A DNA stretch of 64,000 nucleotides. Origin: Penicillus capitatus. Lineage: Eukaryota; Plantae; Chlorophyta. The position numbers and the translations under genes are program-made. Location: contig OZ287701.1 in NCBI GenBank assembly GCA_965649825.1, positions 113,101 to 177,100 of the forward strand, written 5' to 3'. This document shows positions 31,690 through 64,000 of the stretch, piece after piece; the stretch's first letter is position 1, and each line of letters begins with the position of its first letter. The notes below the pieces were generated by a model. It was not told where the DNA came from and made no database searches. It was given only the letters and a program-made list of their open reading frames with translations.

Positions 31690-33737
31690 TCAGGTCAGCG
31701 AAGCACTCTTGAAATCGTCTGAGCACGTAAAACGACGGGAAAATTTGTCACTGACCCGCGATCTGCGAAGATCTAAGGAATGCAGACTCGTCAGTCGTAC
31801 CAATGTCCGTGCACCACGATCGTCCATACATGTCTCCCTGAGATCCAGTGTCTTCAAACTCTGAAGCCTCGAGAGATGCTTGACGCCTCGACATCCGACT
31901 CGGGTGGTGCGCAGATCCAGACATGAGAGCTTTGAAAGATGTGTGAGATGCTGGGCGCCGTCGTTACACATATTGGGCGCCCATAGTTGCAGCGATGTCA
32001 AAGTATTGAGCGTTGAGAGATGCTTCACCCCTGCGCCCGTTGCTCGTGTCAGTCCCAGACAGGCCGTCTCCAACCGTGGCAATCTGCCGAGATACTTCAG
32101 CCCACGATCGCCGACTCGCGTCCTCGACAGATTGAGCGAACGAATCGACACGAGCGATGTCAATCGTGCCAGTCCTCTATCGGCCACGGCCGTCCCACGG
32201 AGATCCAGACTGCGCAGACAAGTGAGCTCAGCGAGACATCCCATAGCATCGTTGCCGATGACGGTCTCGCTGATGTTGAGATAGGTCAGATGGCGCAACG
32301 TTGACAGCGACTGCAGGGCTTCATCGTCCACACACGTCTTGCTGGCATCCAGCGATTTTAGCGCGCCGAGACGGGCGATGTGCTGCATACCGACATTGCC
32401 GATGTAGGTCGATGCCACGACGAGTCGCGTCAGGCTGACGAGGGCCTCCAGATGCGGCGCACCGTTGTCATTGATGTTCGTTCGTTCGAGATCCAAACTC
32501 AGCAGTTTCACAAAGCCCGTCATGCAGCGAATCCCTTTGTTCGTGATCTTCGTCCATCCCAAGTCGAGCGAGAGCAAACGGGTGAGTCCAGCGAGATGGA
32601 CCAGTGCCTGATCGGTGATGCCCGATTTGACGAAGCTCAGATGTCTGAGTCTCTGCAATCGCCGCAATCCTTCCCAACCGCGTCCCGTAATGCGCGTGTA
32701 AGCCAAATTGAGTGAGAAGAGATTCGGAAGACATGAGAGAGATGAGACGCCGATATCTGTGATGTCTGTACCGGAGAGATCGAGTGAACGGATCCAGATC
32801 AAATGCGTCAGGCATTTCATCGCGTTGTCATCCACGCCGACCATCAGATTCGACGTGGCCAGATCCAATGTCCGCAGTCTTGTCATTCCAGCAAGGTAAC
32901 GTAGACCGTCGACGGTTACCGGAACGGATCTGAGATCCAACGACGTTATTTTTTTGAGAGATGAGAGATGTTTGACGCCATCGTCGTGCACCCAGGTGTG
33001 CGCCAAATTGAGAACGGCCAATTTTTCGAGCATCGCAATCCACGAAATGCTGTCGTCGCCGATCTGTGTATGCTCCATATTGAGCGATGTCAAATTGGAC
33101 AACCTCGCCAGCTGTCGCAATTCGATGCTTCCAATCCGCGTCCCACCGACGTTCAGTGAAATGAGATTCGTGAGCTGAGCGAGATAGCTACACACCACCA
33201 CCAAAGATCGCCGTGAGCAGCAAGGACGTCAGAAGAGATCAGTCATTGCCTTATGGAGAAATCGCTGATGTGTGTGTTACTGATATCGAGTGCCGTGATG
33301 TTCTTCATAAGCAATAGATGTTCCGCATCGTCATCCTTGAGCTCACTCGCATGCAATCTAACGGTCACACCAATCTCACTCATATTAGCTGCCTTGCTGC
33401 GGCGTGGGCCTCACGTTCGGACATTTGCGAATTTTCTTGCCGTTTTCTCTATCAGCTCCGCAAACGATTTTCCAAATCGGAGTGAAAAATTCGAGAGATG
33501 GACGCGTTCCACGTGGAAGCTTATGGTCTCGCACCAGTACGTGTTCACGCAGCGCAGATGGAGTATGGTCTCCTTATCACACTTTGAGCAAATCTGCGAT
33601 ATCAAGTCGAAAGATAAGCGACCCCAGCGCGATGCCTCATCCGCCTGCACACAAGAGCGCGATGCATTCTTCCCTCGACAGGTGCCTTGACGGCCGACCG
33701 ACCGACCTCTCGAAACGAACCACTGGTCGATTCCCAT
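31690..33737 (-). CDS. F-box-like + ~20 x 24-aa leucine-rich repeat protein
   Basis: WGRLSFDLISQICSKCDKETILHLRCVNTYW (F-box-like), then regular LxxLxxLxxLxLxxTxIxDxG repeats in a 1.5-kb terminal exon; one GC-AG intron at 33188-33249. Confidence 0.85.
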
Positions 33738-36900: not shown

Positions 36901-37049
36901 TCGGATGCATCGACCATTCGCTCGTGCTTCTGCGGCGCGCCATCTCGCAGGACGATCTCGCTGTAGCCCACAGGCTCATCTGTGACAGACCGTGAAGTGA
37001 AGCAACGCATCCATGACTGTCGGTAACGCCAAATGAGACGGGGGATCAT
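33921..37049 (-). CDS. organelle-targeted OPR/FAST-like helical-repeat protein 2, intronless
   Basis: 1080-codon ORF; probable start MIPRLIWRYRQSWMRCFTS (mitochondrial-like presequence); repeats such as FTNWELANVSFAL, LTPPQITNIMFSLAQI, YNAQQITGIFYNLALL. Confidence 0.85.
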   Translation of the reverse strand: MIPRLIWRYRQSWMRCFTSRSVTDEPVGYSEIVLRDGAPQKHERMVDASDDPQLMKYYQMLYKSTSWRDIHRIVSSSPADAMFVQMTWHALKTTPDGYSASRSAFEELVQRTIDVMDDLDDVGYATVWTAVARLSLLHPTLKARLAEKALGPTGDAAFLIRFLPRHLMNVLHSVARIHRVGKTRNLLSANGEAFAQESTLLKVLFRESFRRLNEMNEHDLSALSLSMSILGITDGNMYRQLGEEAEKDIHLKRFTNWELANVSFALTQGGVDLWNEAPRIAREMLNPERHDDCPPRLLAIYLRCLSETKDRVRHARELMPLFRILFDEHVLSLMHPTAIRSTLVGLGYFGITNHAFWTNAATYLLRTDPSRFTVFDWTCMLYSMGLVRYHNQELLDKIATHLMQEPGAIITLRRMGLSNCFFAVGSLKYRNKTFVCALCNALIRDREKPRDLTPPQITNIMFSLAQIAFRHDTVVLYLLEKATESLSEFTNHTLVLFLFGLSLDMYHGDPAHIMAVVEEVFSDKRLQGYSNNEMGMALCALGKLQPPIGDRFPALLEEIQKERRCATYHTADLVRIVKAFVDLRHPIPSKIKECLLQCLEKMDTLPNRSFLDFLHCLETMEGSEKMEKIETRLGEALTNARLDGFRTDELSECITAIANLSTIPQTSIPATLVEELLERVILLGSFSNLSGTALHFSLSALNRTERNQNRPLLYSLAVECSRLPRLKIYNAQQITGIFYNLALLQTLHRTAFDAFVEEMMKPERLGRYREHHVVKILKGLSIGKHKNELIAGTLLNAFLHPKVTLSSVNTACILLNLALLNCWKRPYVDLLMQQVSNEANLDHYGMWEVGVIAYVMGRMKHGDRSVLALLCEQLTTERLQDASDTDLCNLVYGLAYLRHKAEAAVMPLLSEVVKNSRCEGYSNRHLVRLMQSFAEWQIADPCQFAGLSEQMRKKERLQSMRSLQLLYVLKALARLQLFYGDIVDGILNELRQSPARLDDLTAYEMQELRFLAGMVRPPVPATFLPLPKVGSDGGRASSHRIV

Positions 37050-37078
37050 CGCCGAACGATGATGATCATCGCGTCGAG

Positions 37079-39118
37079 ATGATGATGCTACGTGAGTCCC
37101 TCTCTGCCTCCGTCGTTGCGACGAGGGGCTCGTCGCGTTGCGAGACTGTACCCTTTCGGTCATGCGTCCCGCGGCGGCGTATGGGGGGACGGCGTACCTG
37201 GCAGCAACGCATGGGTCCAGTCGATGCGAAACGCCATGTGGCGATCTGCCAGGCGGTGGCGAGACCGACGCGTGCGGGTCACGATTACGATGTGATCATC
37301 ATCGGCTGTGGCGTTGGAGGACACGGGGCGGCACTCCATGCCGTGGAGCAGGTGCAGCAATGGATGCATGTCTGTGGTCGATTGTATGTTCGTGCGTCAG
37401 GGGCTGAAGACAGCAGTGATTGAAGGACACGATATCGGAGGGACATGTGTCAACCGAGGCTGCGTTCCATCCAAGGCACTGCTCGCCGCATCCGGTCGGA
37501 TTCGGGATCTCAAAAACGAAATGCATCTCAAGTCCCTCGGCATCCAGGTGACATCCGAGCGTCCGGCAGAATACGGGAAGAGCGTGTAAGGGGGAATGCG
37601 GGTTTTAGGTCGGAGACGTGCAGTTCGATCGACAGGGCATTGCAGATCACGCCGAGAATTTGGCCAATACGATCCAGGGCAATCTGAAACGATCGTTGGA
37701 GGCATTGGGCGTCGATATCTTGAACGGCAATGCTCGATTCGTCGGGAAGAATCGATTGAGCTATGGACTGCCTGGTCGAGTGGATGTGGGAGGCGAAGTG
37801 ACAGCCGGCGACATCATCATCGCCACCGGTTCCGTTCCCTTTGTCCCGCCAGGTCACACATCTTATGTGTGAGAATACTATGACGGCGGACAGGTCGCAG
37901 GTATTCCGATCGATGGCAAGACCGTCTTCACGTCAGACCATGCTCTCAAACTCGATTGGCTGCCACCGTGGATTGCCATCATCGGCAGCGGCTACATCGG
38001 CCTCGAATTCTCCGACGTCTATACCGCCCTCGGCAGCGAAGTGACGTTTGTGGAGGTTCACTCTTTTGCTCTCTGTCTTTTGTGTGACCGACTGACCCTA
38101 CTGTCAAGGCATTGGATAAATTGATGCCTGGGTTTGACGGAGAGATCGCCAAGACGGCACAGCGACTGCTGATCAATCCTCGGTCGATTGACTATCATAC
38201 AGGTGTCTTGGCCACCAAGGTCACACCTGGCGTCCCAGGCAACGCGATTCTCACTCTTTTCCGTCAACGGACAGTGTGTTGGATACAGACGTCAAGCCGG
38301 TGTTGATCGAACTGACCGATTTCCATTCCAAAGAGAAAGTCGACATTCTGGAAGTCGATGCCTGTCTGGTGGCCACGGGAAGGGCACCGTATACGAATGG
38401 ACTCAATTTGGAGGCGGTCGGTGTGGAGACCGATCGTCGGGGGTTTGTCCCAGTGAACGAAAAAATGAATGTCCTCGATGTCGACGGAAAGCCCGTTCCG
38501 CATGTTTACTGTATCGGCGACGCCAACGGAAAATACATGCTCGCCCACGCCGCCAGCGCCCAGGTCACACATCTCGATCTCTCTACTAGGCAGTCACACG
38601 TGTGACGTACAGGGTATCTCGGCCGTGGAGAATATTGTCGGCCGACCGCACGTGCTGAACCATCTCTCCGTCCCGGCTGCCTGTTTCACGCATCCCGAGA
38701 TCTCTTTCGTGGGACTGACCGGAGAGCAGGCCAAAGAGAAATCAAAGGCCGAGGGTTTCCCTCTGGGCGTCGCAAAGACGTTCTTCCGGGCCAATACCAA
38801 AGTCTCATACTTAAGCATCGATCTCACACGTGTGACCACAGGCGTGTCGTCTAGGCATTGGCTGAGAAGGAAGGCGAAGGAATGGCCAAGATTATCTACC
38901 GAAAAGACACCGGAGAGATTCTGGGCGTCCATATCATTGGCCTGCACGCCGCCGATCTCATTCACGAAGCGTCCAATGCACTGGCGACGGGACAGAACGT
39001 CGAAGACATCCGATTCAATGTCCACGCACATCCGACGCTGTCCGAAGTCCTCGACGAGTTGTTCAAGCAATGCCATCTGAAAAAGATCGATGCCAAACAG
39101 CCAGTGATGTCAAAGTAG
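37079..39118 (+). CDS. LPD: dihydrolipoamide dehydrogenase (plastid/cyanobacterial-type E3)
   Basis: [68 protein letters not shown]; seven introns including one GC-AG. Confidence 0.95.
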
Positions 39119-41819: not shown

Positions 41820-44800
41820 ATGCTTTTGCGACGATGCTATTTACCGCCACGTCTACTGCGCGCCGCGACGACGCCTCTGCGATGCCCCTCTGACGCAACG
41901 CCACACGCGAGCAGTCCTATCGATGCACCACCTCCTGTACTCAACCCACTCCTTCCGCCTTCCTATCATCGATGGGGTTCGTGCTGGACGATCTGGAGGA
42001 TGCCGTTGGGATATCGAGGCTTCGGCGTGTTTCCTTCTGCGAATGAGAGTGGCGAGCCGCCGCCGCCGCCGCCAGAGGAGCTGGGCAGAAGCTGGGAAGA
42101 TGTTCAATCGCTGCTATCAACCTGGAAGCAACAGAAGCCGATGATGGGCACCGTATCTGCCCTCTTTCAGTCAATGCCTTCTCTTGGACCTATACCCGAG
42201 AATATGGATCTCACTCCTCTCACACAATCCGTTTTGGAACTGCTGCCGCATTTGGATCCGCAGACGTTGTCCATGATATACTACTGGAGCTGCAAGTTCG
42301 GCCTCAACGATCTCGGTTTCATTCAGGACGTCAGTCGACAGATTCTCCAGATCCCGAACCTAACAGACGTCCAGCCAAAACACCTGGTGCTCATGATCTA
42401 CAGCTGTGGTTGGCTGGTTCGTCACGAAAAACGCCAAGGCACGTCGATACGCTACCCTGGGATGGCCGCCTTCGTCGATCACGTGGCACGGGCGCTGACA
42501 TCGCCCACTGTCGTCGTCCAGCTAACAGAGCAGGATCTGTCGAACAGTATCTACAGCTTGGGACTGCTCAACTATTCCGAAAACGAAGTCATCTATCCTT
42601 TGCTGAGTCGTATCGAACGGCCAACAGTGCTGCCGCGATTTCTGGAGCAGGAACTGGCCAATATGTTAGCAGGAATGTCATCGCTGGGCCTCAAAGGACA
42701 TCCAGCAGTGGCGGCTCTGTCATTGGAAGTGGTCGAACGCGAGCGACTGCGAATGTACAAGGAACCTGAGCTCTGCAGTCTCTTCCACAGTTTTGCCACA
42801 CTGGACTACCGAAACCCCCGAACGCTCGACATTCTGCTAAGGGAGACGGTGCGCTCGGGACGTATGACTGTCTACAAAGAGACCCAGCTGGCAAATCTGC
42901 TCTACTCTCTGGATCGACTCGACGTTCAGGATCCGCGCGCCTGGAGGATGCTATTGAGTGAGGTCACACTTCCGGAACGCCTGCCAAAATTCGAATCGTA
43001 TCAGTTGGCGAACATCATGTATGCCTTTGGCCGATGTGACTATCGCGATGCTCAGGCCATGCATCGACTGGTGCAGGAAGTGTCCCACGAAGGCAGAATC
43101 GGACAGTACTCTACGAGAGAGTGCTCACTGATTCTGTACGGTATGAGTCAGACGAGGCACAACGATCCATCCGTGCTGTCGATGTTCTCAAAGGAACTGT
43201 CCAAACCGGGACGACTGAAAGAAGCGGGACTGGCGCACAAGACGTTAAGTGGGACGCTGCTATCGTTGGCCAGATTGGGACATCGCGATCCCGATCTCAT
43301 CCAACGGTACTTTATGGAAGTCCTGGTCGGCAGAAACATGGCCGAGATGGATGGCGAGATCCTGGCACAGTACATTTTCTGCCTCGGCAAATTCAAGATC
43401 CCCTTTCGAGGACCGACCGAAGAAGTGGTCGCCGAGATACTGGAAGTTCCGGCGAAGCTAAAGAACCTGTCACATCGTGGACTGGGAATGCTGATCTATG
43501 GACTGGGTCAGATGGGTCATGAGATGACGCCCCATATGAAGCCTCTAACCGCCATACTGCAGGACGGCATTGGCACCGTCGAGCGATTCTCCGTGCAAGA
43601 TCTCGCGATGCTGATCTACAGTTTTGGCCAGATGCGTCTGGACGAGCCGGCATTGGTCGATCGTATACTGGACAGTTTTACTCGGCCGGATCGGCTGATG
43701 AAGACGACGACGCAGCACCTGTCCAATGTGATGTATGGACTGGCGATGCTGCAGCATCGCATCCATAACAGCGCTCTCGAAATACTGGAAGGCGAATTGG
43801 CGCGCGATTCCCGAGTGAAGAGCCTGACCTCTCAGGAACTGGCAAATCTGATCTTCAGCATCGGTATGCTGCAAATCGACGACCGTCCCGGAATCCAACG
43901 CCTCGTGGAGAAGCTCACCGACGAGGCGATTCTCCCAGAGCGTCTGACACAGTTTCGCGAAATGGAGCTGAACTGCGTCTTGACTGGCTTGAGTCATCTG
44001 CGCTACCGTGAGCCGACCATTCTCGTCCCTCTCCTGGAAGAGATCACACATCCTGCTCGACTCAAGCAGCTCAAGGATCAAGAAATCGCCAGCGTGGTCC
44101 ACGTGATGGCGCAGTTGGGCATCTGTCCTGACGAACTGTGTGAGAAGCTGCTGGATGAGGCACAGGCAGCCGAGCGTCTCAATCGTTACGATGCCAATTC
44201 GCTCGTTATGATCATCTACAGTCTTGGCCGACTGCAGAACCAGAACTACGTCGAGACCGTCCGTGCCTTCGCCGAGATTCTGTTGCAGTCGCCGACGGCC
44301 GAGAAGATGGGCGAACAGAATCTGGCGAATTTTCTCTACGGTGTGACGTACACCCGTTGCGACGTTCCGGAGATCGTCGAAAAAATCTTCCACGAGATTA
44401 CCAAGCATCATCGATTGCCTCGATTTCACGGCGGCGAGATTCTGAACATCATGAAATCGATTCTGCAGCTGAAGGCGCGTAACATTCCGATCGAAGGTCT
44501 GGATCACGTTGCCAGGATCTTTGCCATCGAGATGTGTGCCACGAGCCGCATCCCAAACTACTTGCCGTCTCAACACGCACAGGTGCTGCAGATGCTGAGC
44601 GCCTTGCGCAACAAAAACGTCGCTACCGTGTTCCCCATCCTCGAGGAGCTTCACAAAACCGAGAACCTGCATCGGCTCACGGCGCCCGATGTGGCACGGA
44701 TCGTCTTTTCCGTTGGCCCCCTTGCCTTCGTCAATCGCAAACTGCATCCCAAACTGGCCCTGGCGGTGAAGCCCATCCTCAAACAGGCGATCCTCTCCAA

Positions 44801-45182
44801 CGGCCCCAGCGAGATGCACTGCCAAAGCATCACGGAGTTGGTTGTCGGTATGTCGATGTTGGGTCTACAGGATACCTATCTCCTGGACAATATCGCCACG
44901 GAGATTATCAAGCCGACGCGATTGCGCAGCTTCCGTGCCTGGCATCTCAGTCGAATGTTCTATGCCGTTGGCCAGTTACGCTATCGCAATCTCGAATTGC
45001 TCAGGGCGCTGGCGGCGGAGCTGTCGCGATCGGATCGATCTCAGCGACTGGACTACCGTCACTGGTCCAATATCTTATCCGCCGTTCTGATGCTGCGATT
45101 CAAAGACGAGTCCTTTGCCAAAGTGATCGAGAAGCAGATTCATGTTCCAGAAACGACAGAGGCTGTACAATCATCTATGTAA
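41820..45182 (+). CDS. organelle-targeted OPR/FAST-like helical-repeat protein 3 (39-aa repeats), intronless, 1120 aa
   Basis: Single ORF; transit-like N-terminus MLLRRCYLPPRLLRAA; strict 39-aa period (LTEQDLSNSIYSLG / FLEQELANMLAGM / YKEPELCSLF / YKETQLANLLYSL...). Confidence 0.88.
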   Translation: MLLRRCYLPPRLLRAATTPLRCPSDATPHASSPIDAPPPVLNPLLPPSYHRWGSCWTIWRMPLGYRGFGVFPSANESGEPPPPPPEELGRSWEDVQSLLSTWKQQKPMMGTVSALFQSMPSLGPIPENMDLTPLTQSVLELLPHLDPQTLSMIYYWSCKFGLNDLGFIQDVSRQILQIPNLTDVQPKHLVLMIYSCGWLVRHEKRQGTSIRYPGMAAFVDHVARALTSPTVVVQLTEQDLSNSIYSLGLLNYSENEVIYPLLSRIERPTVLPRFLEQELANMLAGMSSLGLKGHPAVAALSLEVVERERLRMYKEPELCSLFHSFATLDYRNPRTLDILLRETVRSGRMTVYKETQLANLLYSLDRLDVQDPRAWRMLLSEVTLPERLPKFESYQLANIMYAFGRCDYRDAQAMHRLVQEVSHEGRIGQYSTRECSLILYGMSQTRHNDPSVLSMFSKELSKPGRLKEAGLAHKTLSGTLLSLARLGHRDPDLIQRYFMEVLVGRNMAEMDGEILAQYIFCLGKFKIPFRGPTEEVVAEILEVPAKLKNLSHRGLGMLIYGLGQMGHEMTPHMKPLTAILQDGIGTVERFSVQDLAMLIYSFGQMRLDEPALVDRILDSFTRPDRLMKTTTQHLSNVMYGLAMLQHRIHNSALEILEGELARDSRVKSLTSQELANLIFSIGMLQIDDRPGIQRLVEKLTDEAILPERLTQFREMELNCVLTGLSHLRYREPTILVPLLEEITHPARLKQLKDQEIASVVHVMAQLGICPDELCEKLLDEAQAAERLNRYDANSLVMIIYSLGRLQNQNYVETVRAFAEILLQSPTAEKMGEQNLANFLYGVTYTRCDVPEIVEKIFHEITKHHRLPRFHGGEILNIMKSILQLKARNIPIEGLDHVARIFAIEMCATSRIPNYLPSQHAQVLQMLSALRNKNVATVFPILEELHKTENLHRLTAPDVARIVFSVGPLAFVNRKLHPKLALAVKPILKQAILSNGPSEMHCQSITELVVGMSMLGLQDTYLLDNIATEIIKPTRLRSFRAWHLSRMFYAVGQLRYRNLELLRALAAELSRSDRSQRLDYRHWSNILSAVLMLRFKDESFAKVIEKQIHVPETTEAVQSSM

Positions 45183-46072: not shown

Positions 46073-46168
46073 ATCGATCGATTCGATTTGATTCGATTTG
46101 ATTCGATGCGTTTCGATTCGATTTGATTCGATTTGATTCGATGCGTTTCGATTCGATCGATTCGATCG
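46073..46168. repeat. TTCGA/TTTGA pentamer microsatellite with a 35-bp higher-order duplication
   Basis: (ATTCGATTTG ATTCGATTTG ATTCGATGCG TTTCG) x2 at 46081-46150, with flanking ATCG/TTCG units. Confidence 0.9.
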
Positions 46169-49934: not shown

Positions 49935-51519
49935 ATGGGGACGCCGTTTGTGTGTAGTACCCCCGAAGGCGTTTCCCTCATAGAGGCGAGATGCGTCGCA
50001 CGACTGCCAGACGAGCAGAGGCGATTTCTGAATCCAATACCGCACCGCTGGATCATGAAGACGTCAGGTCGTGACCGATCGACCCTTCAGAAAGGCGGCC
50101 GTCGTGATCTCTTATGCTGCAGCAAGTTGCCGCTTATGTTGCGTGCTCTGGCTGGGGAGCCTGTGGAGCGACCTCCTGTTTGGATGATGCGTCAAGCTGG
50201 ACGATACATGAAAGTCATTCCTGACCCTTCCTCCCTCACTTCGCTACTGAACCGCGTCGTCAGGTGTATCAAGATCTCTGTGTCAAGCATCCGACCTTCC
50301 GAGAACGATCAGAGACTGTGGAACTGGCTGTTCGATGCATGACGAATCGGAATGTGGAACGAAGCGTGCGCTGTAGGTGGAGATCACGTTGCAGCCGTGG
50401 AAAGCGTTTCGCCCAGATGGGATCGTTCTCTTCTCCGATATTCTCACGCCGCTGCCCGGAATGAATATTCCGTTCGATATTGTCACGGGCAAAGGACCCA
50501 TTATTCATACACCCATTCGCACGATGGAGGTCCATCCGACCGTGGAGGGAGGGCTCAGACAGGCGATCGCCTTTCTGTGTTGGCCAGGACGTCGAGACCG
50601 TGAGAGCTTTGGACGCAGAGCGTTCCTGTCCTTTTGTCGGCGAAACGTTGAGAATTCTGAAGCAAGAGGTCAATAACGAAGCAGCCTTGTTGGGATTTGT
50701 GGGAGCACCGTACACGCTCGCTTCGTACATAGTGGAAGGCGGCTCATCCAAGCACTACATACATGTGAAGCAACTGGCATTTTCGCAACCACAGGTGCTG
50801 CACGCCTTGCTCAAAGTTTTGACGGGCAATGTCATCGAATACTGCAAATACCAAGTGAACGGATTGATCGAGCGCCCTCAGATGTGTTTCGTGAACGGTA
50901 CTTTAGGCCAAGAACGGCGCACAAGTGATTCAGGTTTTCGATTCTTGGGCTTCCTCTTTGTCTCCCCGCGATTTTGACGTCTTCTCTGGTCCGTACCTCA
51001 AAAGAGTCATCCAGGAGTTTAAGTCGTCTTATCCTGACGTTCCTGTGATCCTGTATATCAGTGGAAGCGGCGGGCTGCTTGAAAGAATGGCACAGTGAGA
51101 GCAGACGTGCACCTTACGGTTATGCTCATTCCTTGCTGCCAGATGTGGACCGGATGCGATTTCTGTGGATCATTCTGTCGATATGATGGACGCCATCAAC
51201 AGAATCGGCAGCAATTTTGCCGTCCAGGTGACCACGCTCCTGCCTTTCTGCCGCATCCGATGCCTTTACCTATTGCCAGGGAAATCTGGATCCAGGTGTG
51301 CTCTTCGGGTCGAAAGACGTCATCGAAGAACGCATCATCGACCTTGTAAAGCGCGTCAAAGCAACAGGCGTGGATCGTCATCTCTTGTGGATGGCCCGAT
51401 CTGTGTGTGACGTAGGGACGCGTCATGTGATGAATCTGGGCCACGGAGTGTGGGTCGGCACCCCAGAGGAGAATGTGGCGCACTACTTCGAAGTCTGCAG
51501 GACTGTTCACGAGCGATGA
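49935..51519 (+). CDS. hemE: uroporphyrinogen decarboxylase, plastid-type (5' end uncertain)
   Basis: [68 protein letters not shown]; about seven introns. Confidence 0.93.
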
Positions 51520-52817: not shown

Positions 52818-55146
52818 TCAGTTTCCGGTGATGGAACGGCGATTCGTTGGCATTAACCAGAAAACGGAACGAAACATAATGCGACAAGCCAGTCGATGAA
52901 AGACGAAACAAATTAAGAAGCTTAGCACAAAAAGAGCGACGGAAAATGTCACCCAAAACCAGATTCTCTCCATAAAGTGATCAGAATGACTCGAAAGAGC
53001 ACAGCACATTGTGTTTGACTTTGAACTAATGTTTCCAAGTGGACAGACGACATTTCGCGTCAGTATTTTGGCGGCGTCATCGATGGGACGTGCTGCGTCC
53101 AGAACCTCTTTCATGTGACACAAATCGGCGGGTGGAACAGTAAAGTAGCCTCGTCTTGGCGGCGCCCTGACAACGCCACCACACGATTCAGCAGAATCAT
53201 ACTTGCAGATGAAGGAGGCTTCTTCTGTGCAGGGTTTGACGAAGAGATTCTTCATCACTCCCCTGGAATCGATAGCAACACAGGGCTCTCTTCCCTGCAT
53301 GAAAATTGGCTCGCGGACTCCCCAGTACTCAGACCCATCTTCCAGGACGGAATCTTCAGAATCGATCCAGGAGAAACGGCCACCCGTTTGTCGATGTGCA
53401 CCGACCCAGGATCCATCTGTCTGTGCGAGCCTCGCTAGAAACGCAAGCTCGTCTTCATCCACTATGCTCACTAACTGTCCACCGTCTTCCACGCACAGCT
53501 CCTTCGCTTCCTCCCAATTGACTTCTTCAACGAACACCTTGTAGGCCGAATCTCGAAATGTGAAACAGGAGTTTGCACGAATGTCTTCGGCGAGGACCGT
53601 ATCCGGACACTCAGACAGAGGATCTTGCGCCTCTCTGTAGATCTGTTGCTCGCAGGGAGTGATCTCTGCCGAGATGCACTGTCTGGAACGACGGATGATA
53701 TCGTGGAGGGCTTGGTCGCTGGTAACACCCCCGATCTCGAACTCGTGGAGCCCGACATCGTGTCCAGCCACACCGAGGAACACATCTGGCGATTCTTCTG
53801 TCCCTTCCGCGAAGAATGGTATCGCTACTGTTGTGAGTAGCCCCAGACCACTTGCATCGTCATAGGGCTCTACCCAGATAGGCATCTCGATCCTTCTACT
53901 GGCAAAGTAGAGATAGTAAGAATTCAGAGCGTCGAAGGTATTGGTGTTCGGTCTGATGAACGACCAGGCGCCATTGTTGGCGCAGGCCAGTTGTCTGGGG
54001 ATAGCGTCATCTGCATCTCTAGTCATGGAGTAGGTAAAGATTGATGCTCTGCTGCCTGTCCGCTCCTCCAGTCTATGCTGCATCGCGTTGACAGCAGCAG
54101 CCATCTCCGACGGTTTAATGCTCTTTCCATCGGGACCGGTGGTGTCCACTCCATCTGTCAAGAACAGAATAACCTTGTGACAATGCGAGCGTGACTCCTC
54201 TTCGTCGTCTGCGTTGGTCAGGATGCGGAAGGCCGCTTCAAAGGCGGCGGTAAAGTTCGTGTTCCCACCTGGTTTTACTTTGTCCACTCGAGTGCGGAGA
54301 TTCTCAAGATGTTCAGCACGAACTCGAATAAGATCAGACAGTGTCCACAGAGGCTCAGCTTCGTCGGAGAAGACGATGATATTCATGAAATCTACGATGG
54401 TAAACGTTCCCAGAATGTCCTTCACTGCCCGTGCTGTTACTTCCCACTTTGATTCCTTGTTGAACCACGCAACATCGTTCATCGAATCGGACTTATCCAC
54501 AACTAACACAATGTCCTTCGGCCCAGTACTGGCCCCAATGTACCATGGACGCTGTCGAGGATCGTAAGCAGGACACCCACCATAATACTCGTCCATCCTT
54601 CTGTCGTGAGGCAGAGGAAACGAAGGAAAGGCTCGAAGATGTCCATCTCGGGTACCTACGCCACGCCAATCGCTCTATGTTCGCAACTGCGTATGTCTTC
54701 TTGCCTATGTACGACGAACCGTATTCGTCGCCTCCGTAAATTTCATGGAAGGTTTCGTCGAGGTGCTTGTACGTACAGATGCTTTCCTTTAGACTCTTGC
54801 TTAGGTTTTCTGAAAACGCTTCCGGCGGTGTGATGACGTTGGACGTTGTGCTATCGATTCGACGTCCAGGTGTCGTGCACTTCTGTGGAGTCCCATAGTT
54901 TATCGAACAGTGCATACTGTGGTTGTCCGACGAACACGCATGTTTTGAACATTCGCATTCTCGCACGAGCTGAACACGTCTGCTGTGCAGTGCGGTGGCC
55001 TGTTCAGCGATTGCTTTTACGATGTTTTCCTGGGACGCGACGAAATCCGTAAACTCCTTCGGTGCTTCGATTCCGTGCGCTTCATCCGTAGAGATTGAAA
55101 AAAAGATGCAGAGGAGTGCAAAAGAGAGTATCCGACAGAAGTGCAT
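52818..55146 (-). CDS. alpha2delta/CACHD1-like Cache-vWA protein with C-type lectin domain, type I membrane protein
   Basis: Signal peptide; YDPRQRPWY; vWA DIVLVVDKSDSM, TNFTAAF, LFLTDG; WVEPYDDA..GHDV; CTLD WEEAKELC..GGQLVSI..WVGA..W..EP...CVAI....C..FICK; C-terminal TM. One GC-AG intron at 54656-54704. Confidence 0.88.
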
Positions 55147-57269
55147 ACTTAAGACAAAGGCGACGAAAGTACTAGATGTTCATCAACAAGTAGTCTTTTC
55201 TGTTGATAAATCGGATGACGGTTAAATACGGTGCCCCGTCGCTAAACAAATGCGACGCTTATCGGCCTCGTTTTGCCGTTGGTCGACGACTCATAGCCCA
55301 AGAGACAGTTAAGAAATAGAAACGGTTGAGTTTCTGTGAGATTTCCGTTCATCCTTAGTTCACAGTGGTGTGACTCTGCGATTTCTGATCAGAAAGCGCA
55401 CGAAAGCGTTCATGATTTGGTCTTCGATGAGCATGAAGAGCTTACTTGAATACAGGACGATGGTATTGGGATGACCTTATACATCCTTGAACGGTTTTTC
55501 GTGAAAATGCTCTGAAGATTCTGACGCATCTGTGTATAAGATGAGTTCGATGATGACGGCTAGATAGACGTTGTGTCGTGGCGCCTGCAAATTCATGTTT
55601 CGCCTTACACTCATCGTACGACCGCCATTTTACAAATAACGCACCTGTTCGCCGAGGATAGTCGCGAGACATCGGAGTGCGTGTTGAGTGAGAACGCTGT
55701 TTTCCATCACAGTTGCGTAAGGCACGTAAGCGCGCGTGATGCTTCGCTCAACGTCGTCGTCTGCAAAAGTGGCCACACGTCAAAGTCGAACGTCTTACAA
55801 AGAACAACAGAAAAGCAAAACTCAAGCCGTCCTCCACCTCTTATTCGGTTCTGGTGATGTGACTTTCGTAGGCAGGTGAGTCATCCTAGCGCCAGAACCA
55901 AAGAAAAGCGCCTCAGATGACTCAACCAGCGTCCCCCCACCGCATGGACCCCACGACAACAAGACAGTAGTCCCATCGCCAGGCGACAATCCACGTGCCC
56001 CTTCCTAACAAGGCAGTCCCGTCGCCGCCGCCGAAATCTCGGCGACAAGAACACCGTAGTTTTCGGCAAACTGTGACTGCGTTTTCTCTTTTCTCTTTGA
56101 TGCTGCGGCGTGCCTTTCGTCAGAAGTGTCCTTTGCATTCGAACGTAAGCTGAGGAGGCCTTTGTTGAATATTTGCTATTTGTCTACGTTTGCTCCATCT
56201 TTGGCGGCATTTGAATTTACCTCCAACCGTTGCGTTAGTGTGGACCGACGAGAAAAACAGTCGGCAAGATGGTCGCCAGAAGAAGGAAGAAAATTCAAGG
56301 ATAGGCGAGACCTCGACCGACAACTTGGCCTAAAGCCGTCCCATACGGCGCGCAATGTGAAGATCAAACGTGACTTGTAAAGAGGAAATGAAGGCTCCCA
56401 AGGTTTGCTATAAGGATACAAAACCCAATCTGTATGAAGTCGCGTTATGATCTGGTCCCATTGGATTAACTCGTCATTACAGCTTTGCCTGCACTGAAGC
56501 ACTGCAACGTGAGGACCGAGACAGACAAACTCAGAAAGTTCGTTACAATGGCAAATGTCTAATGTTTTCATGTTCTTAAGGACCACAGTCGCATCATCTA
56601 TCAAAATAACACAACAGCACTTGAATGGAATTTCGTCGTCCAAGCCTGGGCTTGTGTCGCCAGGGAGAATATCGATCTCTTCGAGTGTTCATTTTTCCTG
56701 CAGTGCGGTTCTCTGACGAACAAAGACCTCTTGTCCGCCTTTAAGGAAGTCAAAACGTGGCATTCGGAGGAGAGAGGAATGTACTGCCCGACAGGTACCA
56801 GGCTATGTGTTTGGATGACACGGATGCAGCAGGTTTCTTCGCCGAGTACAACTAACCCAGTAGAAGATTCAGCAGACGTGCACGCTCAGGCAGTAACTAG
56901 TTCATCCGTTTGCGAAGTCCCGCAGAAAGCACATACATTCATACTGATCTTGAATGAGACGGAATAAACCCCTAACTGAAGACGATTAAAATCGAGTGCC
57001 TGGTTTAGTGGAAAGGGACATCGAGTACGAACGGCGACGTAATTCTCTATCCTGAGCACCACTATGTGCGAGTGAAAGGAACGGCCACGGGGGCTATTCA
57101 GTTCATGGGTGGTTTTCCGCCTTATCCGATGAATCCTCATTTCATTCGAGCGTGAAGAACTTGTGATGACATGACCGTATCAGAACTACATCGGAGCGTT
57201 GGTTGCATGCATCTACCTCTGCACCGCGCGCTTTAAACCTTTTCCCAGTCGTGCGCCTTCGCGTTGGCA

Positions 57270-59544
57270 ATGTTTATTGCCGATAAAACTACGATATATT
57301 CGAAATTCGCGGCACGCGTTGTGCTGCTGTCGCTTATCCTTCTCTGTGCCTGTTACGGCCAGAAGACGGATGGGGACGACCAGCTGACGAAATTCATCAA
57401 ATCCCAGGAAGAAATCGTCGAGCGCCTCGCTCGGTTGGCGACTGAGTGGCACACTGACAGAATTCGTTCCGTTCGCGACTGCGAGTGCTCGAGGCATGCC
57501 TGCTCAAACGATTTTGCGAACGTTGAGTGTGTCACGAGCTTTGGCGGACTTGAAATGTGCAAATCGGAAGGCCGTCGCATTGACTACAACCGCTCCGTCT
57601 TTCGAACACCGAGAGCCATACATCCGGAGCATCTGAGTGACAGTCTCAAGGAGAGCATCTGCATCTACAGAAAGCTGGACGACGCTGCCAGAGAGTACGG
57701 CTCAGAGGAGCTCGGCTGGTTCTTCGTCGGTAGACACAGCTCGCCTCTCGTTCTCTTCTCTGCAGTGGACGATTGTAGGAACACGGGACGGTCATTTCCG
57801 GAACTTTCCTGGAGCGGCGGAAGAGCGAGGGTTGGAAAACGGAGAGGACCTGTGGAATCAGTGCAGACCCTACGACCCCCGAATCCGTCCGTGGTTCATC
57901 GGTGCGAGCACGGGACCGAAGGACATCGTATTGGTCGTGGACAAGTCTGCATCCATGTCGAATCGCATCGGGGATGAGAACAGGACAAAGTGGGATCTGG
58001 TTCTGGATGCCGTCGGCGACATCATCGACACGTTCACGTTCGCCGACTACGTCGCTATCGTCACCTTCTCGAACGAGGCCAGCACCGTCCCGAAGGGATC
58101 CGATCTCCTGAGAGGGAGGGCAGAAAATCTGTCACTGCTGAAAGAGGCGTTGCTCGAAGAGGCCCCGTCCGGCGAAACGAAGAATTTTACTGCTGCGTTC
58201 GAGAAGGCGTTCTCTCTGCTGTGGGAAGGATGCGACAACGAGCCGGCGCAGTGCTCGAACTGCGAGAAGATCATTCTCTTCCTGACGGATGGGTCTTCCG
58301 GAGAGGACGGGGAGAGCATCAAGCCTTCCGAAATGGCGACCACCATCCAGGAACTGCAGGAGAAGCTTAGCAAAGAGACCGATAGGCGTGCACTCATCTT
58401 CACCTATTCGATGTCGGACGAGGCCGATGACTTGATTCCCAGGCAGATCGCGTGTAGCAACGGTGGCGCCTGGGCCTTCATCGGACCCGAGACGAACACA
58501 CTGGACGCTCTCAATTCCTACTATCTCTTCGTGGCCGCAGGGAGACGCACCGAAGTGCCTTTCTGGATCGAACCGTACGAAGATGCCGGTGGCATGGGAC
58601 TCATCACCACCGTCGCCGTGCCATTCTATGCCCGCGGGACAAGAGACGTGCCGGACGTGTTCTTGGGAGTGGTCGGACACGACGTGCCACTGTGGGAGTT
58701 GGAGTTCGAGGGTGTGACGCAGGATAAAGTCTTCGCCGCCATCTTCAACCGAGCACAGCGTTGCACCCTCACGGACGCCATCACCCCATGTGCATTGCAG
58801 GTATTCCGCAACGCCTACGACAGAAGGGCATTGTGCCCCGATCCCATTCCGATCCTCTCCAACGCGTCGTCGCCGAAGGCCAAATCGCAGGAATCGGACA
58901 TCCAGTGCCACGCGTTTAGAGACAAGTACTACTGGCGATCGGTCGCGGAGGTCAAGTGGAGAAAGGCCGCGTCGAGATGCGAAGACAGGGGTGGCCAGCT
59001 CGCGGATGTCGAAGACAAAGAAGAGCTTGCCTTTCTGGCGAACCTGGCCTCGAACGATGGGACGTGGATCGGTGCCAAGCGAAGCAAGACCAGAGGCTTC
59101 GCCTGGCGCAACAAATCCCGGTCGAAGCTGCCAAAAGACTCGGAGTACTGGGGAGTGCAGGAGCCCGTCTCCGTCCTCGGCACAGAGAACTGCGTCGCCA
59201 TCGACAGCCGGGGCGTCACTGCGAATTTGAAGGCGATGCCGTGCAATCGTCGCGCCACCTACATATGCAAATTCGAGACCGATTCCCCCTGTCCTGCCGG
59301 CGTTGCTGACGCAGCGAAGAGAGGATTCCTCAACGTACCTCCTCTGAGCAAGTGCGTGGACGAGATCGAGGCCCTAGACGAGACCCGACCTGTGAAAGAC
59401 GTCAAGCAGCTGACCGTGGAGGACGTCATGTGCGACCTCGGAGAGGAACGGACCAGCGAAGAGCTGCTCTGCTGTGACGACAACGTCGAAAAAGAGGTCT
59501 CCTGCAAGAAGGGGAGACGGTCGTCCTCCGAAAAGAAATGCTAG
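57270..59544 (+). CDS. alpha2delta-like Cache-vWA + C-type lectin protein, paralogue 2 (no TM in the simplest model)
   Basis: Signal-like N-terminus; YDPRIRPWF, VVDKSASM, LFLTDG, WIEPYEDA, GHDV, WRKAASRC..GGQLA..WIGA..CVAID..C..YICK; intron at the same position as in paralogue 1. Confidence 0.88.
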
Positions 59545-61769
59545 CGAGGAACGTCGGTAGGAGTAACAGGAGGACTCTGCAAACGCTGCCCAGACGGTGG
59601 ACTGCAGACGTCACTGTGTGTGGCAGCAGCTGGGGGAAATCAAATACTTTGCATCGAATGTTGTGAAGCCTACAGGAGTTTCGTTATCGTAGTCCCTTCC
59701 ATGGCCGTGTCCTTTCTCGAATCTCTGCGTTTATGGTCTATGCTTGTCTGTCATTGCCATGTGTATCTTCCCATACACCTCGGAATGGTTGTTTCATTTA
59801 ACTGTTTGTCGAACTAAACAAGTTCTTAAACGTATCTAGAGTATCGGGCTGCAACGCGAACGACAGTGTCTTCAGGTAGCCGATGTCGTGAAGGGAACTC
59901 TGCTAATCTCTGCCCTTCATTTCGGCAGCAAATGCCGTAGCGATACCGGAGAACGCGAATGAAGGTAGAGCGACTCTTCGTTCCCCTCCTCGATCTCTTG
60001 ACAGTCCAAGGCCATTGTTTCCTTGTCATACGACACTCTGGAGAAAGTGGTGGACTACGTGTTCGTTCGTTTGTCGCCGGCGAATCGCAGAGAACCAGAG
60101 GTTCATTGGGCGTTGTGTGAACCAGAATCGTTTTGTTTGTAAACTGCAGCTCAATGCGGTTATCGTCAATTTCTGCATGAACACGAAGGTAGAGGCTCCT
60201 TGTGTGCACAAGTCCAGTTAGCTCCTCTCTGTCCTGCGATCTCAAGGTGAGCGTCGATACAGAAACTGTCGAAGTGACAGAACGGGTATGCTTTCTCTGC
60301 CCCAAGGCAATCTGCAGCAGCAAGATCCGTCAACGAAAAATCCAAGATCTACGTTCCCTTCCGTCGGGATCCTTTGAGTATGACTTGGAAGACATTCACG
60401 CACAATAGTTATGGTGCATTGAAAGAAATTGATCTGCAGACTTTGTATTGCTTACGACTCAGCAAGTCTGCACATTCTCCTTGAAGGCTTCATATCATTA
60501 TTCAATTTGGATGCTTTCATTCTCTCTCCGTAGCACGCCTGACCTTCGACAGTATATTACCGAAGATTTCGTCTCTCGGTCAACATCTCGATTAGACCCA
60601 GATGATGTGCTCCATATGAGTTATCCTTTAATGCTGTGTGCGTACTCCTGCATTTGTATCAATACACGGATAGCGACGCGGCCATAAGTTGCGAGTTAAA
60701 AATCGATCTAACATAAAGCAATGCCAAAGCGACCGTACCATCATAACACCATCTTTGCATGGGTGCTTGGATAGTGGCGATACACCTCATCCCGATTCTT
60801 GTCCGTCTATCTGACAGACATGACCGATCGGTCATCTTGCTACATCGAGCAGAGGTTTCGCGGTCTTCTTCGTGGCAGTGCTGTTTGTCATTCCGTCCAC
60901 TGCATCAAATTCCGCCCGACAAGCTAACGCCAGATGTGCGAAGTTTTTTTATCGACCTCTAAACAATCGATGAGTACTAGCGCCGGCAAAGAAATTCAAA
61001 GTTATGTGCAATGACAAAAAGTCGATCATCACCTTGTCGATCACCCTAAGAGACAGCACGTCTCCATAATACAGCCCAATTTTGACGAGCAATAGCATTC
61101 CGTGACCTGCATAACAAAATGTTGTCCAACAAGTGAGTATCGACCAGAGTTAGAAGCCATGGGTATCTCGTTCAGGCGACGGTTGGAAGATCGACAATGT
61201 TTCATAGAACGATACGAAAGAATGAGACGAGTGTTGTAACTCCATCGTAGTGTGGGACCGCGAGAGTCGCATCGATGGCAGAGGAGAATGAAGCGACGTC
61301 TATGCCAGCGAGGTAACATCTGATGCCCGATAATGCATTGAAAAGACGTCGCGGTGAAGAACAGACGCTATCATTGTACTCTCCTTGTAAACTATTGCTG
61401 TTTGACAATCCAGTCGTCTTGGAGTCTGATTACGACCGATATAAGCGTGTTTGTCCAAAAGACTTTGTCATTTCTTCCTCGCTCGAGCCTCTGTTCGTTT
61501 TCTTTGCGATTCATATTCAATGGTCGCCTTTACAGCGTGCGTGCGCGCGCGAATCGCAAACCATGTTCGCCATCTGTCGCATCTTAAGCGTTGTATGAAC
61601 AATGACCTCTTTCTTGTACAGCGTGTGATTGCGTTCTGTTTTTGAAAAGAACACTACAGGTTTTCTCGTGATTGACGCGACGTTGGCTCAGAGATGAACA
61701 CTTCTACCACTCCACTTCTCTTTCTTGTCGACGTCTGCCCCGAAGCGGGAATGATTACATAAGGGTCTG

Positions 61770-64000
61770 TTTTCTGGATTTCTGCAAAGACGCGCGACTC
61801 TTATCCAATTGCCTTCTGCCTTCAAGTTTCATAGGTTATATCCGCAACGGCTGACGTTCGTCTTCAACGCAGTTCGACGGTATTGCCTCGTACAATGGAT
61901 GGCCGACTCGAATACTCCCAAATTGTCACGTCGCACAAGGACGGTGGTTCCGTTGAGGTCCATCATACCAAACGCAACACCTTGGCCAAATGACGTTTCT
62001 GTTCAGTTTCTGCTAAACAATGTACAGCGATGGAGGCATGAAGATCTCTTCCATAGCGAGATTTTCGTCATTCACGGGCTCAAGTGGTAAAACATGTGTG
62101 GCGTTCTCCCCCCGGATGAATGCGTGTTCGACAGGAGAGTGGTTTTCTGTCGTACCTTTCCTCCAGAAGGTGGCCGCGAAAGATTTGCCGTACAGCTCCT
62201 CTATTGCAATGCGAAGACGATCACGTTCAATGTCTCCATATCATTCCGCAACCAGTCGAGTCCGGGCAAGACCTTCGTACAGCCAAGTGTGGTGCCCAGT
62301 GATGCCGTCATTATTCGACCATCGGGTTTCTGCATCTTAGTCAGGTTTTGTCGGACCATTCCTTTCTGCTCTGCGTGGTTCATCGATGACTACCCAGACT
62401 ACGAAACCATCCTCAGTCCCACAGCTGGCTTCGTAGTCGACAACACTCTTGTCGTGGGAATCCTTCTGTCCCACATCAAGGATGTCAGTGCAAGAGCAGG
62501 ATCTTCCACCATAGGAGACGACATGGGCCTCATCTCTGTGGAAATTCTCTCCGAAGACAGCATACGTAAGAACATGAAAGAGGGATGCCCGTTTGGTCTC
62601 GCTTCTGTCAAGAGAAGACGACATCACAATATCAAACGCAATTCGGTTGTTGGCAACTTCACGGTGCTGTTAAGACTATCAGACCTCAAATCACTCTCTG
62701 TTCTTGGTGTATCCAGATGCCAAACAGCCGCCTGTGGCTGTGCGAACGTACAGCACGAGGTGTTGTCCTGCTGCAGGGCTTGTACAATATGCCAGTCGGT
62801 ACAAAATTCGGTGACCTTCGTACAAAAGACATGTCCAGGGAGCAACCGTGGCTGACTTTGTTTCAAGAACGTCGGCTTCCCGACGAATACTTTCCCCATA
62901 TTTCAGACAACGATGTCATTGTTTTCTGCAAGCTTTATGATCCGGAAGAGAGCACGTTGACGTATGTGGGATTTCTGCAGATTTCCAGGTCAAAGAGATG
63001 TCTAGATTTCATCGCCAGAGTCGCCGATCTGGCAGAGGTCCCTGTCGGCATTGGATTCGATGTCTACATCGAGGAAGGCGATCTCGGCGTTCGACATCTC
63101 TCGAATCTCTATTCCTCTGTCCTCGATGTGCGTAATTAACACGGAACACCTCATCCATTCCGTTGATCGCTGTCTGTAGACCGGTATTGTTTCTGGATCA
63201 GTGGTTGTCTTACGTCCGAGATTTGACGGACAGGACGTCTCTGAAGAGACCGTCCGAAATGAACTGAAATCGCTGTACTTAGACAGACTCGAGGTCTCTA
63301 GCAGAGCGGAACAGAAAAGGGTGAGAGAAGATTCACAGACTCGAGTATCTCAGGTACGGATTGTCAGCCCATAACTGTTTCAATGATCTCTGTCTTCTGC
63401 ATGGCAAGGTTAACGAGAATGACATGTGTGTTGTCTGCTTGGACGCCCCACAGACCTCTGGATTTCTGCATGGAACAACGTACGATCCTGTCATCTGCAT
63501 CCTATCTCTCTATGCCACTGTTATTGTGTTCTCAGTTCCCATCGTTGCGTCTGTGAACCCTGTGCTCTGAAGATCTCACAGCAAGCGCAGCCGCGATGTC
63601 CCATTTGTCGCGCTGTCGTTCAGCACACCATCTTTAAGATGTTCTAGCAGTTCTGCTTTTAACGTATTTTCTTCTTTGTAACAACGATCGCGGTGTGTGC
63701 TTTGTGTGCATATTCTCATAGATAAAGAGCCTGTTTGACTTCGCATGAATCGTTTGGAAAGATCTGCTGAGACAGCTGCGACAAGTCCATGACCGACCTT
63801 TATGCGCGAGTGGCCTGTTAGTGTGTCCTTTTCATTTTTCTTTCGCTATCCGTAAACTCCCTTTCTCTTCGTTAATGCGAAGCTTTTTGTACATGTGATT
63901 GGTTTCGAGAGAGGTCATCTAATCACTTTCCGATTCGTAGCGGGATCGGTTATCACCGCATTAACGCGTTGCACAGTTTCGACACCGAACGTCGAGCAAG
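61770..64000 (+). repeat. direct segmental duplication of ~4750-7990 (minus the TRIM), running off the window end
   Basis: The 5' flank, coding exons, introns and 3' intergenic sequence (GTGATTGGTT..ATCACTTTCCGAT..GATCGGTTATC..ATTAACGC) all align with the left-hand locus. Confidence 0.88.
61895..63647 (+). CDS. MATH/TRAF + USP7-like UBL + MDM2-type RING protein, copy 3 (intact counterpart of copy 1)
   Basis: Same 8-exon structure as 4875-7628, uninterrupted at the TRIM site (CNAKTITF); ends ...CPICRAVVQHTIFKMF*. Confidence 0.87.

Follow-up and report, generated by a model that had tools for sequence, protein, structure and literature searches.

The DNA analyzed was a 64,000-nt stretch of the alga Penicillus capitatus (GenBank assembly GCA_965649825.1, contig OZ287701.1, positions 113,101 to 177,100, forward strand), referred to below as the window and numbered from its first letter. 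Two paralogous genes, here called A and B, lie at 52818-59544, an interval that spans the stop codon of gene A to the stop codon of gene B. Each encodes a protein in which a Cache module, split by an inserted VWA domain, is followed by a C-type lectin-like domain, here abbreviated CTLD. The gene models were as follows.

52818..55146, minus strand: whole coding region of gene A (exon 1 55146..54705, intron 54704..54656, exon 2 54655..52818); 759 aa, type I membrane protein
54656..54704, minus strand: intron of gene A; 49 nt, phase 1, GC-AG boundary
55147..57269, no strand: spacer separating the start codons of the divergent genes A and B; 2,123 bp
57270..59544, plus strand: whole coding region of gene B (exon 1 57270..57729, intron 57730..57778, exon 2 57779..59544); 741 aa, secreted, without membrane anchor
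57730..57778, plus strand: intron of gene B; 49 nt, phase 1, GT-AG, interrupting the codon that is also split by the intron of gene A

A first-pass annotation, made from the letters alone, had described two divergent copies about 2.1 kb apart that share an intron position, and both statements were borne out. The two introns interrupt the same Gly codon in ..[IV]G/TRDGH.. (slash at the junction). The orthologous intron of A in a related species (locus L001, about 9782-9827) measures 46 nt, has GT-AG boundaries and lies in the identical codon. The splice junction of A (..SSYIG/TRDGH..) agrees with uninterrupted transcript-like homologues, for example P0006 (..WTYLGTRDGHF..). The A and B proteins are 46.8% identical across 712 residues, and no further family copy is present within the window.

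AlphaFold (AF2) models of A and B were built from family alignments. Confidence, as predicted local distance difference test (pLDDT) and predicted template modeling (pTM) scores, was 88.0 and 0.85 for A, and 87.5 and 0.87 for B. The domains are listed below, with residue numbers for A; MIDAS denotes the metal ion-dependent adhesion site.

55072..55146, minus strand: A, signal peptide (aa 1-25), an N-terminal hydrophobic stretch; AF2 helix 2-20, low pLDDT
54718..55071, minus strand: A, long N-terminal helix and Cys-rich element with a CxCSxHxCS motif (aa 26-143); AF2 helices 30-62 and 117-137, short strands 79-105, pLDDT about 90
54522..54717, minus strand: A, N-terminal half of the Cache module (aa 144-192), with the intron inside; Y178, R183 and W185 in register with alpha2delta-1 Y238, R243 and W245
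53943..54521, minus strand: A, VWA domain (aa 193-385); MIDAS D201, S203, S205, T280, D315; Pfam VWA 1.7e-13
53733..53942, minus strand: A, C-terminal half of the Cache module (aa 386-455); Y412, D414, A415, T423 and D447 on alpha2delta-1 Y452, D454, A455, T463 and D493
53574..53732, minus strand: A, helical disulfide-containing linker (aa 456-508); AF2 helices 460-470 and 481-491; C474, C482 and R488 nearly invariant
53196..53573, minus strand: A, CTLD (aa 509-634); Pfam Lectin_C 2e-14; calcium/sugar site degenerate (EPI598, F619, V620)
52818..53195, minus strand: A, C-terminal part, made up of a Cys-rich stalk (aa 635-700), a transmembrane helix (about aa 712-733) and a cytoplasmic tail of 26 residues, with the stop codon
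57720..57915, plus strand: B, N-terminal half of the Cache module, with the intron inside; YDPRIRPWF
57916..58500, plus strand: B, VWA domain; complete MIDAS (DKSAS, T in GETKNF, LTDG)
58501..58707, plus strand: B, C-terminal half of the Cache module; WIEPYED ... GVVGHDV
58906..59280, plus strand: B, CTLD; Pfam Lectin_C 1.1e-14; EPV for EPN and K/A for ND; Foldseek match to langerin with a TM-score of 0.84
59281..59544, plus strand: B, Cys-rich C-terminal region ending in ..SSSEKKC and stop, without hydrophobic segment

In both proteins, Pfam placed the VWA domain (A 1.7e-13, aa 195-387; B 2.2e-12, aa 202-396) between YDPR..W and W.EPY, and Lectin_C was recognized in each at the values listed. 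The sequence signatures named in the first-pass annotation are all present, as YDPRQRPWY (A) and YDPRIRPWF (B) before the VWA domain, WVEPYDD and GVAGHDV (A) or WIEPYED and GVVGHDV (B) after it, and an intact MIDAS made up of DKSDS or DKSAS, a Thr in GGNT-NF or GETKNF, and LTDG. The CTLD lies where alpha2delta carries further Cache domains, as had been stated, according to Pfam and the AF2 models.

Both proteins start with a signal peptide. A has in addition a single C-terminal hydrophobic helix, whereas B has only the signal peptide, and A is therefore taken as the tethered form and B as the secreted form. B-lineage relatives (P0011, P0021, P0024 and P0026) end at the position of B with ..SSSxKxC. 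An extra exon providing B with a transmembrane helix was considered and rejected: a candidate 50-nt intron before the stop leads into a short frame without hydrophobic segment, and the relatives stop likewise. No signaling domain was recognizable in A, including its 26-residue tail, or in B. The designation of these proteins as receptors was consequently not supported, A having only a transmembrane helix and a short tail free of signaling domains, and B and its lineage being without any anchor.

Homology to the Cache-VWA module of alpha2delta and CACHD1 was recovered at the level of both sequence and fold. With phmmer against the PDB, alpha2delta-1 was matched at 4.7e-18 using the whole protein and at 9.8e-19 using the region, values well outside the reach of chance. 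CACHD1 followed at 5.5e-6. Aligning A on alpha2delta-1 paired YDPRQRPWY with YDVRRRPWY, DKSDS with DVSGS, LTDG with FTDG, WVEPYDD with WTNVYLD and GVAGHDV with GVMGVDV. As these motifs are aligned in register, the split amino-acid motif and the MIDAS are regarded as real. When the AF2 models were compared with the PDB using Foldseek, alpha2delta-1 chains ranked on top for both proteins, followed by CACHD1 at about 1e-18. The best values were 5.5e-24 for A and 2.3e-24 for B, in both cases with 7mix_D; A was further aligned to 9vlg_A over 444 columns with a root-mean-square deviation (RMSD) of 3.4 A, and for B the match to 8fd7_D, a complex with gabapentin, spanned 458 columns with an RMSD of 4.9 A. 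A length of about 450 columns greatly exceeds that of the VWA domain alone, and the fold match therefore takes in the helical N-terminus and the Cache module as well.

The module had been labeled dCache. The amino-acid motif and the Cache fold were upheld, whereas the 'd' was left unconfirmed, only one PDC beta-module being visible in both models and the segment from the last pocket strand to the CTLD being helical. A small three-stranded Cys-rich element (aa 79-105 in the model of A) would be the only possible stand-in for a second Cache module.

The best sequence and fold match to A and B is thus alpha2delta-1 (CACNA2D1), with which they share an N-terminal helical region followed by a ligand-binding Cache module split by VWA, a complete MIDAS and the motif Y..R.W / Y.D / D together with T463 and A455. 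Alpha2delta-1, of a subunit class with about 1,000-1,100 aa, has about 1,100 aa compared to about 750 aa for A and B, which are without the second double-Cache domain, the VGCC_alpha2 region, the delta peptide and the glycosylphosphatidylinositol (GPI) anchor. Instead, the Cache module is followed by the CTLD and a Cys-rich stalk, ending in a transmembrane helix in A and without anchor in B. The hydrophobic lining of the pocket also differs (equivalents of W207, V209, Y219, W225 and L456).

These likenesses and differences bear on the possibility that A and B are functional analogues of alpha2delta, that is, auxiliary subunits which bind an algal four-domain CaV-like channel through the MIDAS and control its trafficking or gating. 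Alpha2delta-1 and CACHD1 being the closest solved structures, and the MIDAS being as complete as in alpha2delta-1, are in line with such a role. It is nevertheless considered unlikely: the second double-Cache domain, delta peptide and GPI anchor are missing, the CTLD occupies the place of the former, B is soluble, the many paralogues per genome would be unexpected for a channel subunit, and MIDAS residues are lost in about one in three of the CTLD-bearing representatives described below. Moreover, the scanned open reading frames (ORFs) of the window included no channel gene.

Like A, CACHD1 is a type I membrane protein whose ectodomain is of the Cache-VWA type and which has a cytoplasmic tail. 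According to Gumerov et al. 2022 (PMC8915833), it differs in having two double-Cache domains, with the amino-acid motif in the second, and no CTLD. CACHD1 is also known to bind Frizzled and LRP6 (PDB 8s7c, 9eq6). Gumerov et al. describe an identical motif logic in the bacterial dCache_1AA chemoreceptors PctA, Tlp3 and Mlp37, in which R and W hold the carboxylate and Y and D the amine. By description, these chemoreceptors differ from A and B in having no VWA insertion, a clear membrane-proximal second module and a cytoplasmic signaling domain.

Alpha2delta ranks among the major drug targets, and what its amino-acid pocket does naturally is still debated. In alpha2delta-1, 13 residues line the pocket for L-Leu and gabapentin (10.1101/2022.12.05.519047), and the substitutions R243A and D491A abolish the gabapentin effect (PMC8915833). 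Identical residues are found at eight of these 13 positions in A and at nine in B, which adds W207, and every polar contact is among them. The conserved and differing positions are as follows.

Conserved pocket pairs (alpha2delta-1/A): Y238/Y178, R243/R183, W245/W185, Y452/Y412, D454/D414, A455/A415, T463/T423, D493/D447
Differing pocket positions (alpha2delta-1/A/B): W207/S/W, V209/Y/F, Y219/A/N, W225/L/E, L456/S/G

The motif Y-x4-R-x-W-[YF] ... Y ... D is represented by Y178, R183, W185, Y186, Y412 and D447 in A and by their equivalents in B, so that the claim of a complete split amino-acid motif in both paralogues, in register with alpha2delta-1, was sustained. The differing positions cluster round the ligand side chain. 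With the polar contacts kept and the side-chain lining changed, these residues point to a ligand that would carry alpha-amino and alpha-carboxyl groups and a side chain other than that of Leu.

Within the closer set of paralogues, the D447 column contains Thr in six proteins (P0006-P0010 and P0033) and Gln in four (P0013, P0028, P0032 and P0034), all ten retaining the R, W and Y of the motif. Replacement of the amine-binding Asp by Thr or Gln hints that ligands diversified among the paralogues, some copies perhaps binding something other than an amino acid.

By the established definition, sugar-binding CTLDs have EPN or QPD together with WND as the ligands of calcium site 2. The CTLDs of A and B have the expected fold, both conserved disulfides (C535, C606, C623 and C631 are conserved) and a WIGL-like motif, and Foldseek matched them to mincle and langerin with a target TM-score of about 0.8. 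In this they agree with carbohydrate-recognition domains of the langerin, mincle and DC-SIGN type. The difference lies in calcium site 2. In the columns where P0019 has EPN and L-N-D, the family alignment has EPI and L-F-V for A, and EPV and L-K-A for B, leaving two of the five site residues in each. Only a minority of paralogues combine EPN or QPD with ND (P0019, P0020, P0025, P0033, P0012, P0184, P0200, P0221 and P0237). The glycan input proposed in the first-pass annotation was therefore not supported for A and B, and judging from these residues their CTLDs are best classed as lectin-like domains without canonical sugar site, not as demonstrable lectins.

A word-indexed homologue search yielded about 40 proteins with VWA and Lectin_C. 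A few long ENA contigs each carry several paralogues (44-85% identity), and full-length homologues were found on transcript-like contigs of 2.3-2.7 kb. The search also retrieved proteins of Bryopsis sp. KO-2023 (33-35%) and Porphyra umbilicalis (BU14_0692s0013, 25%) and the EukProt entries g7080, g7085 and g7093. Relatives without a CTLD were found in a chytrid, Neobodo designis, amphioxus and starfish. The N-terminal CxCSxHxCS element, linker, CC..C stalk and transmembrane helix all recur in the CTLD-less P0041, in P0042 (a chytrid) and in P0043 (Neobodo), and the Cys pattern of CxCSxHxCS is kept across the family, CTLD-less relatives included. Since the flanking parts are shared, the CTLD is regarded as an insertion into the Cys-rich stalk. 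P0042, from the chytrid Nowakowskiella sp. JEL0078, has VWA_N, VWA and PDC domains with FEHRARPWY ... WTTPYED ... GVAASDI. It is a fungal protein, although the 2022 survey reported no dCache_1AA protein in fungi (PMC8915833).

When 1.84 billion cluster representatives were searched with a profile, 1,362 proteins were obtained at E<=1e-30. Of the 150 best, 37 run through the CTLD, corresponding to at least 37 clusters at 50% identity. In a domain scan of the 37 representatives and A, Lectin_C was recognized in 37 of 38 proteins, MCP-like_PDC_1 in 12, dCache_1 in 5 and VWA_N in 3. In the 37 representatives, R and W of the motif are preserved almost without exception, whereas about a third are without full MIDAS and only 4 retain both EPN and ND; overall, the amino-acid motif is retained far more often than the MIDAS or EPN/ND. 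Between A and B, identity is highest in the C-terminal half of the Cache module (66%), compared to 53% in the VWA domain and 48% in the CTLD.

This conservation pattern has to be weighed against a role in adhesion, in wound plugs or in the extracellular matrix. Here, VWA and CTLD would cross-link components of the matrix or cell surface, and the Cache pocket would hold a structural ligand only. VWA and CTLD are a common adhesive combination, B is secreted, and the nearest named relatives are siphonous green algae (Bryopsis), in which lectins are used in wound repair (10.1101/2023.11.22.568388). A purely structural role, however, would not require that, of all functional signatures of the family, the small-molecule pocket be conserved best, and the layout also occurs in the non-siphonous Porphyra, Chloropicon and Rhodomonas (PMC11766507). 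This alternative is rated as rather improbable.

Ratios of nonsynonymous to synonymous substitution (dN/dS) were determined for A against its L001 orthologue and amounted to 0.16 overall, with 0.08 for VWA, 0.11 for the C-terminal half of Cache, 0.12 for the CTLD, 0.21 for the stalk and 0.15 for the transmembrane helix plus tail. For B against P0011, dN/dS was about 0.09, a rough value only as dS is saturated at 2.1. Taken with the conservation by segment, these values identify A and B as working genes under purifying selection on all domains. That they might be decaying or mis-assembled copies without function could be suspected from the transposable elements nearby in a related haplotype and from the GC donor site in A. 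GC-AG introns are, however, a recognized minor class among spliceosomal introns. Decay is further contradicted by both reading frames being intact, by the overall dN/dS of 0.16, by the intron position kept across paralogues and species, and by the full-length homologues on transcript-like contigs, making it extremely improbable.

The genomic arrangement was compared with three related loci. L002 (ENA ERZ25074695 ctg340429) has 99.4% identity with window 57064..64000. The stretch L002:136-9367, which corresponds to the position just upstream of window 57064 and thus of B, holds a long terminal repeat retroelement (gag/protease, then reverse transcriptase/RNase H/integrase) and the two ORFs described below, and gene A is absent from it. 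Of the spacer at 55147..57269, only 206 bp beside B match L002 and only about 530 bp beside A match L001, the remainder being unmatched in both. In L001, from a second species, the A orthologue is syntenic with the downstream neighbours of A and B is not adjacent. A B relative is found in L003 (6764-8419 and 10001-11665) in a head-to-tail pair with a paralogue 46% identical to A and B, about 175 kb from the A orthologue on the same contig. The retroelement in L002 and the arrangement in the second species show that the divergent pairing is local and not a conserved unit, and a conserved bidirectional A/B unit was rejected.

Following the retroelement, L002 carries a 618-aa ORF and then a 322-aa ORF with a Cas12f1-like TNB domain (29.9 bits) and a TnpB/Fanzor-type look. 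L002:20373-21908 (minus strand) contains another A-like member of the family, the third; it is about 8.5 kb downstream of B, convergent to it and past the window end, has VWA_2 and Lectin_C, and is 82% identical to A in nucleotide sequence. The window probably cuts a larger family cluster.

The number and arrangement of the copies are relevant to the first-pass proposal, taken here as a pattern-recognition receptor at the cell surface in which inputs from amino acids, metal-dependent adhesion and glycans are combined to sense microbes or substrate. The family is multi-copy and diversifying, with several paralogues per related long contig and the tandem pair in L003; copy arrangement varies between near-identical genomes; and the minority of paralogues with EPN or QPD plus ND would fit sugar binding. 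In Pyropia, a transmembrane C-type lectin gene, which may differ from A and B in architecture, was upregulated 1.72-fold early in oomycete infection (PMC6928737). Against this stand the two out of five calcium-site-2 residues left in A and B, the absence of a kinase or other signaling domain, the secretion of B, and the dN/dS of 0.12 in the CTLD, which is not diversifying between orthologues. On this evidence, A and B are unlikely to be such receptors.

With respect to earlier work, alpha2delta was previously regarded as animal-specific (PMC4202318). Gumerov et al. 2022 then reported that proteins with one Cache module, VWA and the amino-acid motif occur across most groups of eukaryotes, with protists, invertebrates and Archaeplastida among them; a fusion to a lectin is not mentioned in their main text (PMC8915833). 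A and B belong to this family, having one Cache module with the amino-acid motif split by VWA, and differ in the CTLD inserted into the stalk. In a 2024 Mar Drugs review, a single sentence reports vWFA, HK-sensor and CLECT domains, as detected with CDART, for proteins of Porphyra, Chloropicon, Ostreobium, Bryopsis and Rhodomonas, without alpha2delta link and without analysis of amino-acid motif, MIDAS or sugar site (PMC11766507). Proteins of this group have the same three domains in one polypeptide, and those of Bryopsis and Porphyra are direct homologues of A. The Bryopsis genome preprint identified no C-type lectin (10.1101/2023.11.22.568388). Contrary to that preprint, Bryopsis does have C-type lectin domains, three family members (BSKO_07085, BSKO_06514 and BSKO_07372; P0036, P0038 and P0039) carrying Pfam Lectin_C. 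Literature searches retrieved no analysis of the CTLD-bearing subfamily. The architecture itself is consequently not novel, the single-Cache plus VWA arrangement having been described in 2022 (PMC8915833) and the CTLD layout noted in 2024 (PMC11766507). A and B are new members of a layout that had been seen before but not characterized; the novelty lies in the connection with the pocket of alpha2delta, in the degenerate sugar site and in the occurrence of both tethered and secreted forms.

Taken together, A and B belong to the eukaryotic family with a single Cache module split by VWA, an ancient short relative of alpha2delta. Their architecture, fold, pocket residues and constraint are observed; ligand, partner and biological role are matters of interpretation. 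A modest balance of probability favours an extracellular amino-acid-binding adaptor that acts through partners held by the MIDAS and the CTLD surface. In such an adaptor, the Cache pocket would take a free alpha-amino acid or close derivative, the carboxylate being held by R183, W185 and Y178 and the amine by Y412 and D447, with D414 and T423 close by. Since the hydrophobic lining differs, the side-chain preference should be unlike Leu. As A and B are without signaling domain, pocket occupancy would act on the ectodomain, which it may stabilize or reshape as in alpha2delta, and output would proceed via partner proteins. One partner might be caught by the MIDAS metal ion, its acidic side chain completing the coordination, and the CTLD surface could offer a further interface, here other than the canonical calcium/sugar site. 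A represents the membrane-tethered form and B the same ectodomain as a soluble protein. Of the original interpretation as a whole, the alpha2delta/CACHD1-type Cache-VWA module, the motif, the MIDAS and the CTLD were thus retained, whereas the glycan input, the receptor, the pair as a unit and the novelty were not.

Several points weigh against an amino-acid-binding adaptor. Pfam recognized only VWA and Lectin_C, and its Cache and VWA_N models stayed below threshold on A and B (MCP-like_PDC_1 on B, E=0.07). Pocket residues were mapped by sequence alignment, two of the lining positions being in a loop of uncertain alignment. Given the Thr and Gln paralogues, amino-acid binding would not be universal in the family. 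Finally, the bound L-Leu in alpha2delta-1 may be a structural cofactor and not a signal, and the same may apply to A and B.

The adaptor reading can be extended to amino-acid-gated algal co-receptors, in which occupancy would control MIDAS docking to a membrane partner, for example a four-domain calcium channel, and so couple amino acids from microbes, wounding or host substrate to calcium signaling. This extension is speculative and judged improbable. If true, it would show a role of the alpha2delta pocket before its synaptic use in animals. Irrespective of this, short relatives from outside the animals, with all polar residues of the pocket retained, provide a less complex setting for asking what is sensed by the pocket and held by the MIDAS. 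The CTLD subfamily is sizeable, is under purifying selection, conserves the pocket better than the MIDAS or sugar site, and has both membrane-bound and secreted forms.

The other features recorded in the window were the following.

20113-21804, minus strand: Nup93/Nic96
31690-33204, minus strand: leucine-rich repeat protein
33921-37163, minus strand: 1,080-aa ORF without Pfam match
41820-45182, plus strand: FAST/DUF6832 (OPR-like) protein
about 49935-51519, plus strand: multi-exon uroporphyrinogen decarboxylase (URO-D)

Scans for tRNAs and tandem repeats gave nothing relevant. For the URO-D pieces, matches at 69% were obtained with Bryopsis sp. KO-2023 and Ostreobium quekettii and at 68% with Chromochloris; they place the window among chlorophyte green algae, in agreement with the algal host assumed in the first-pass annotation. 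Window 61717-64000 is a segmental duplicate of 4682-7983 with 74-80% nucleotide identity. As the L002 copy of this segment contains USP7_ICP0_bdg, a USP7-like gene is duplicated within the window. A TCGAT pentanucleotide microsatellite of about 19 copies is located at 46074-46166.

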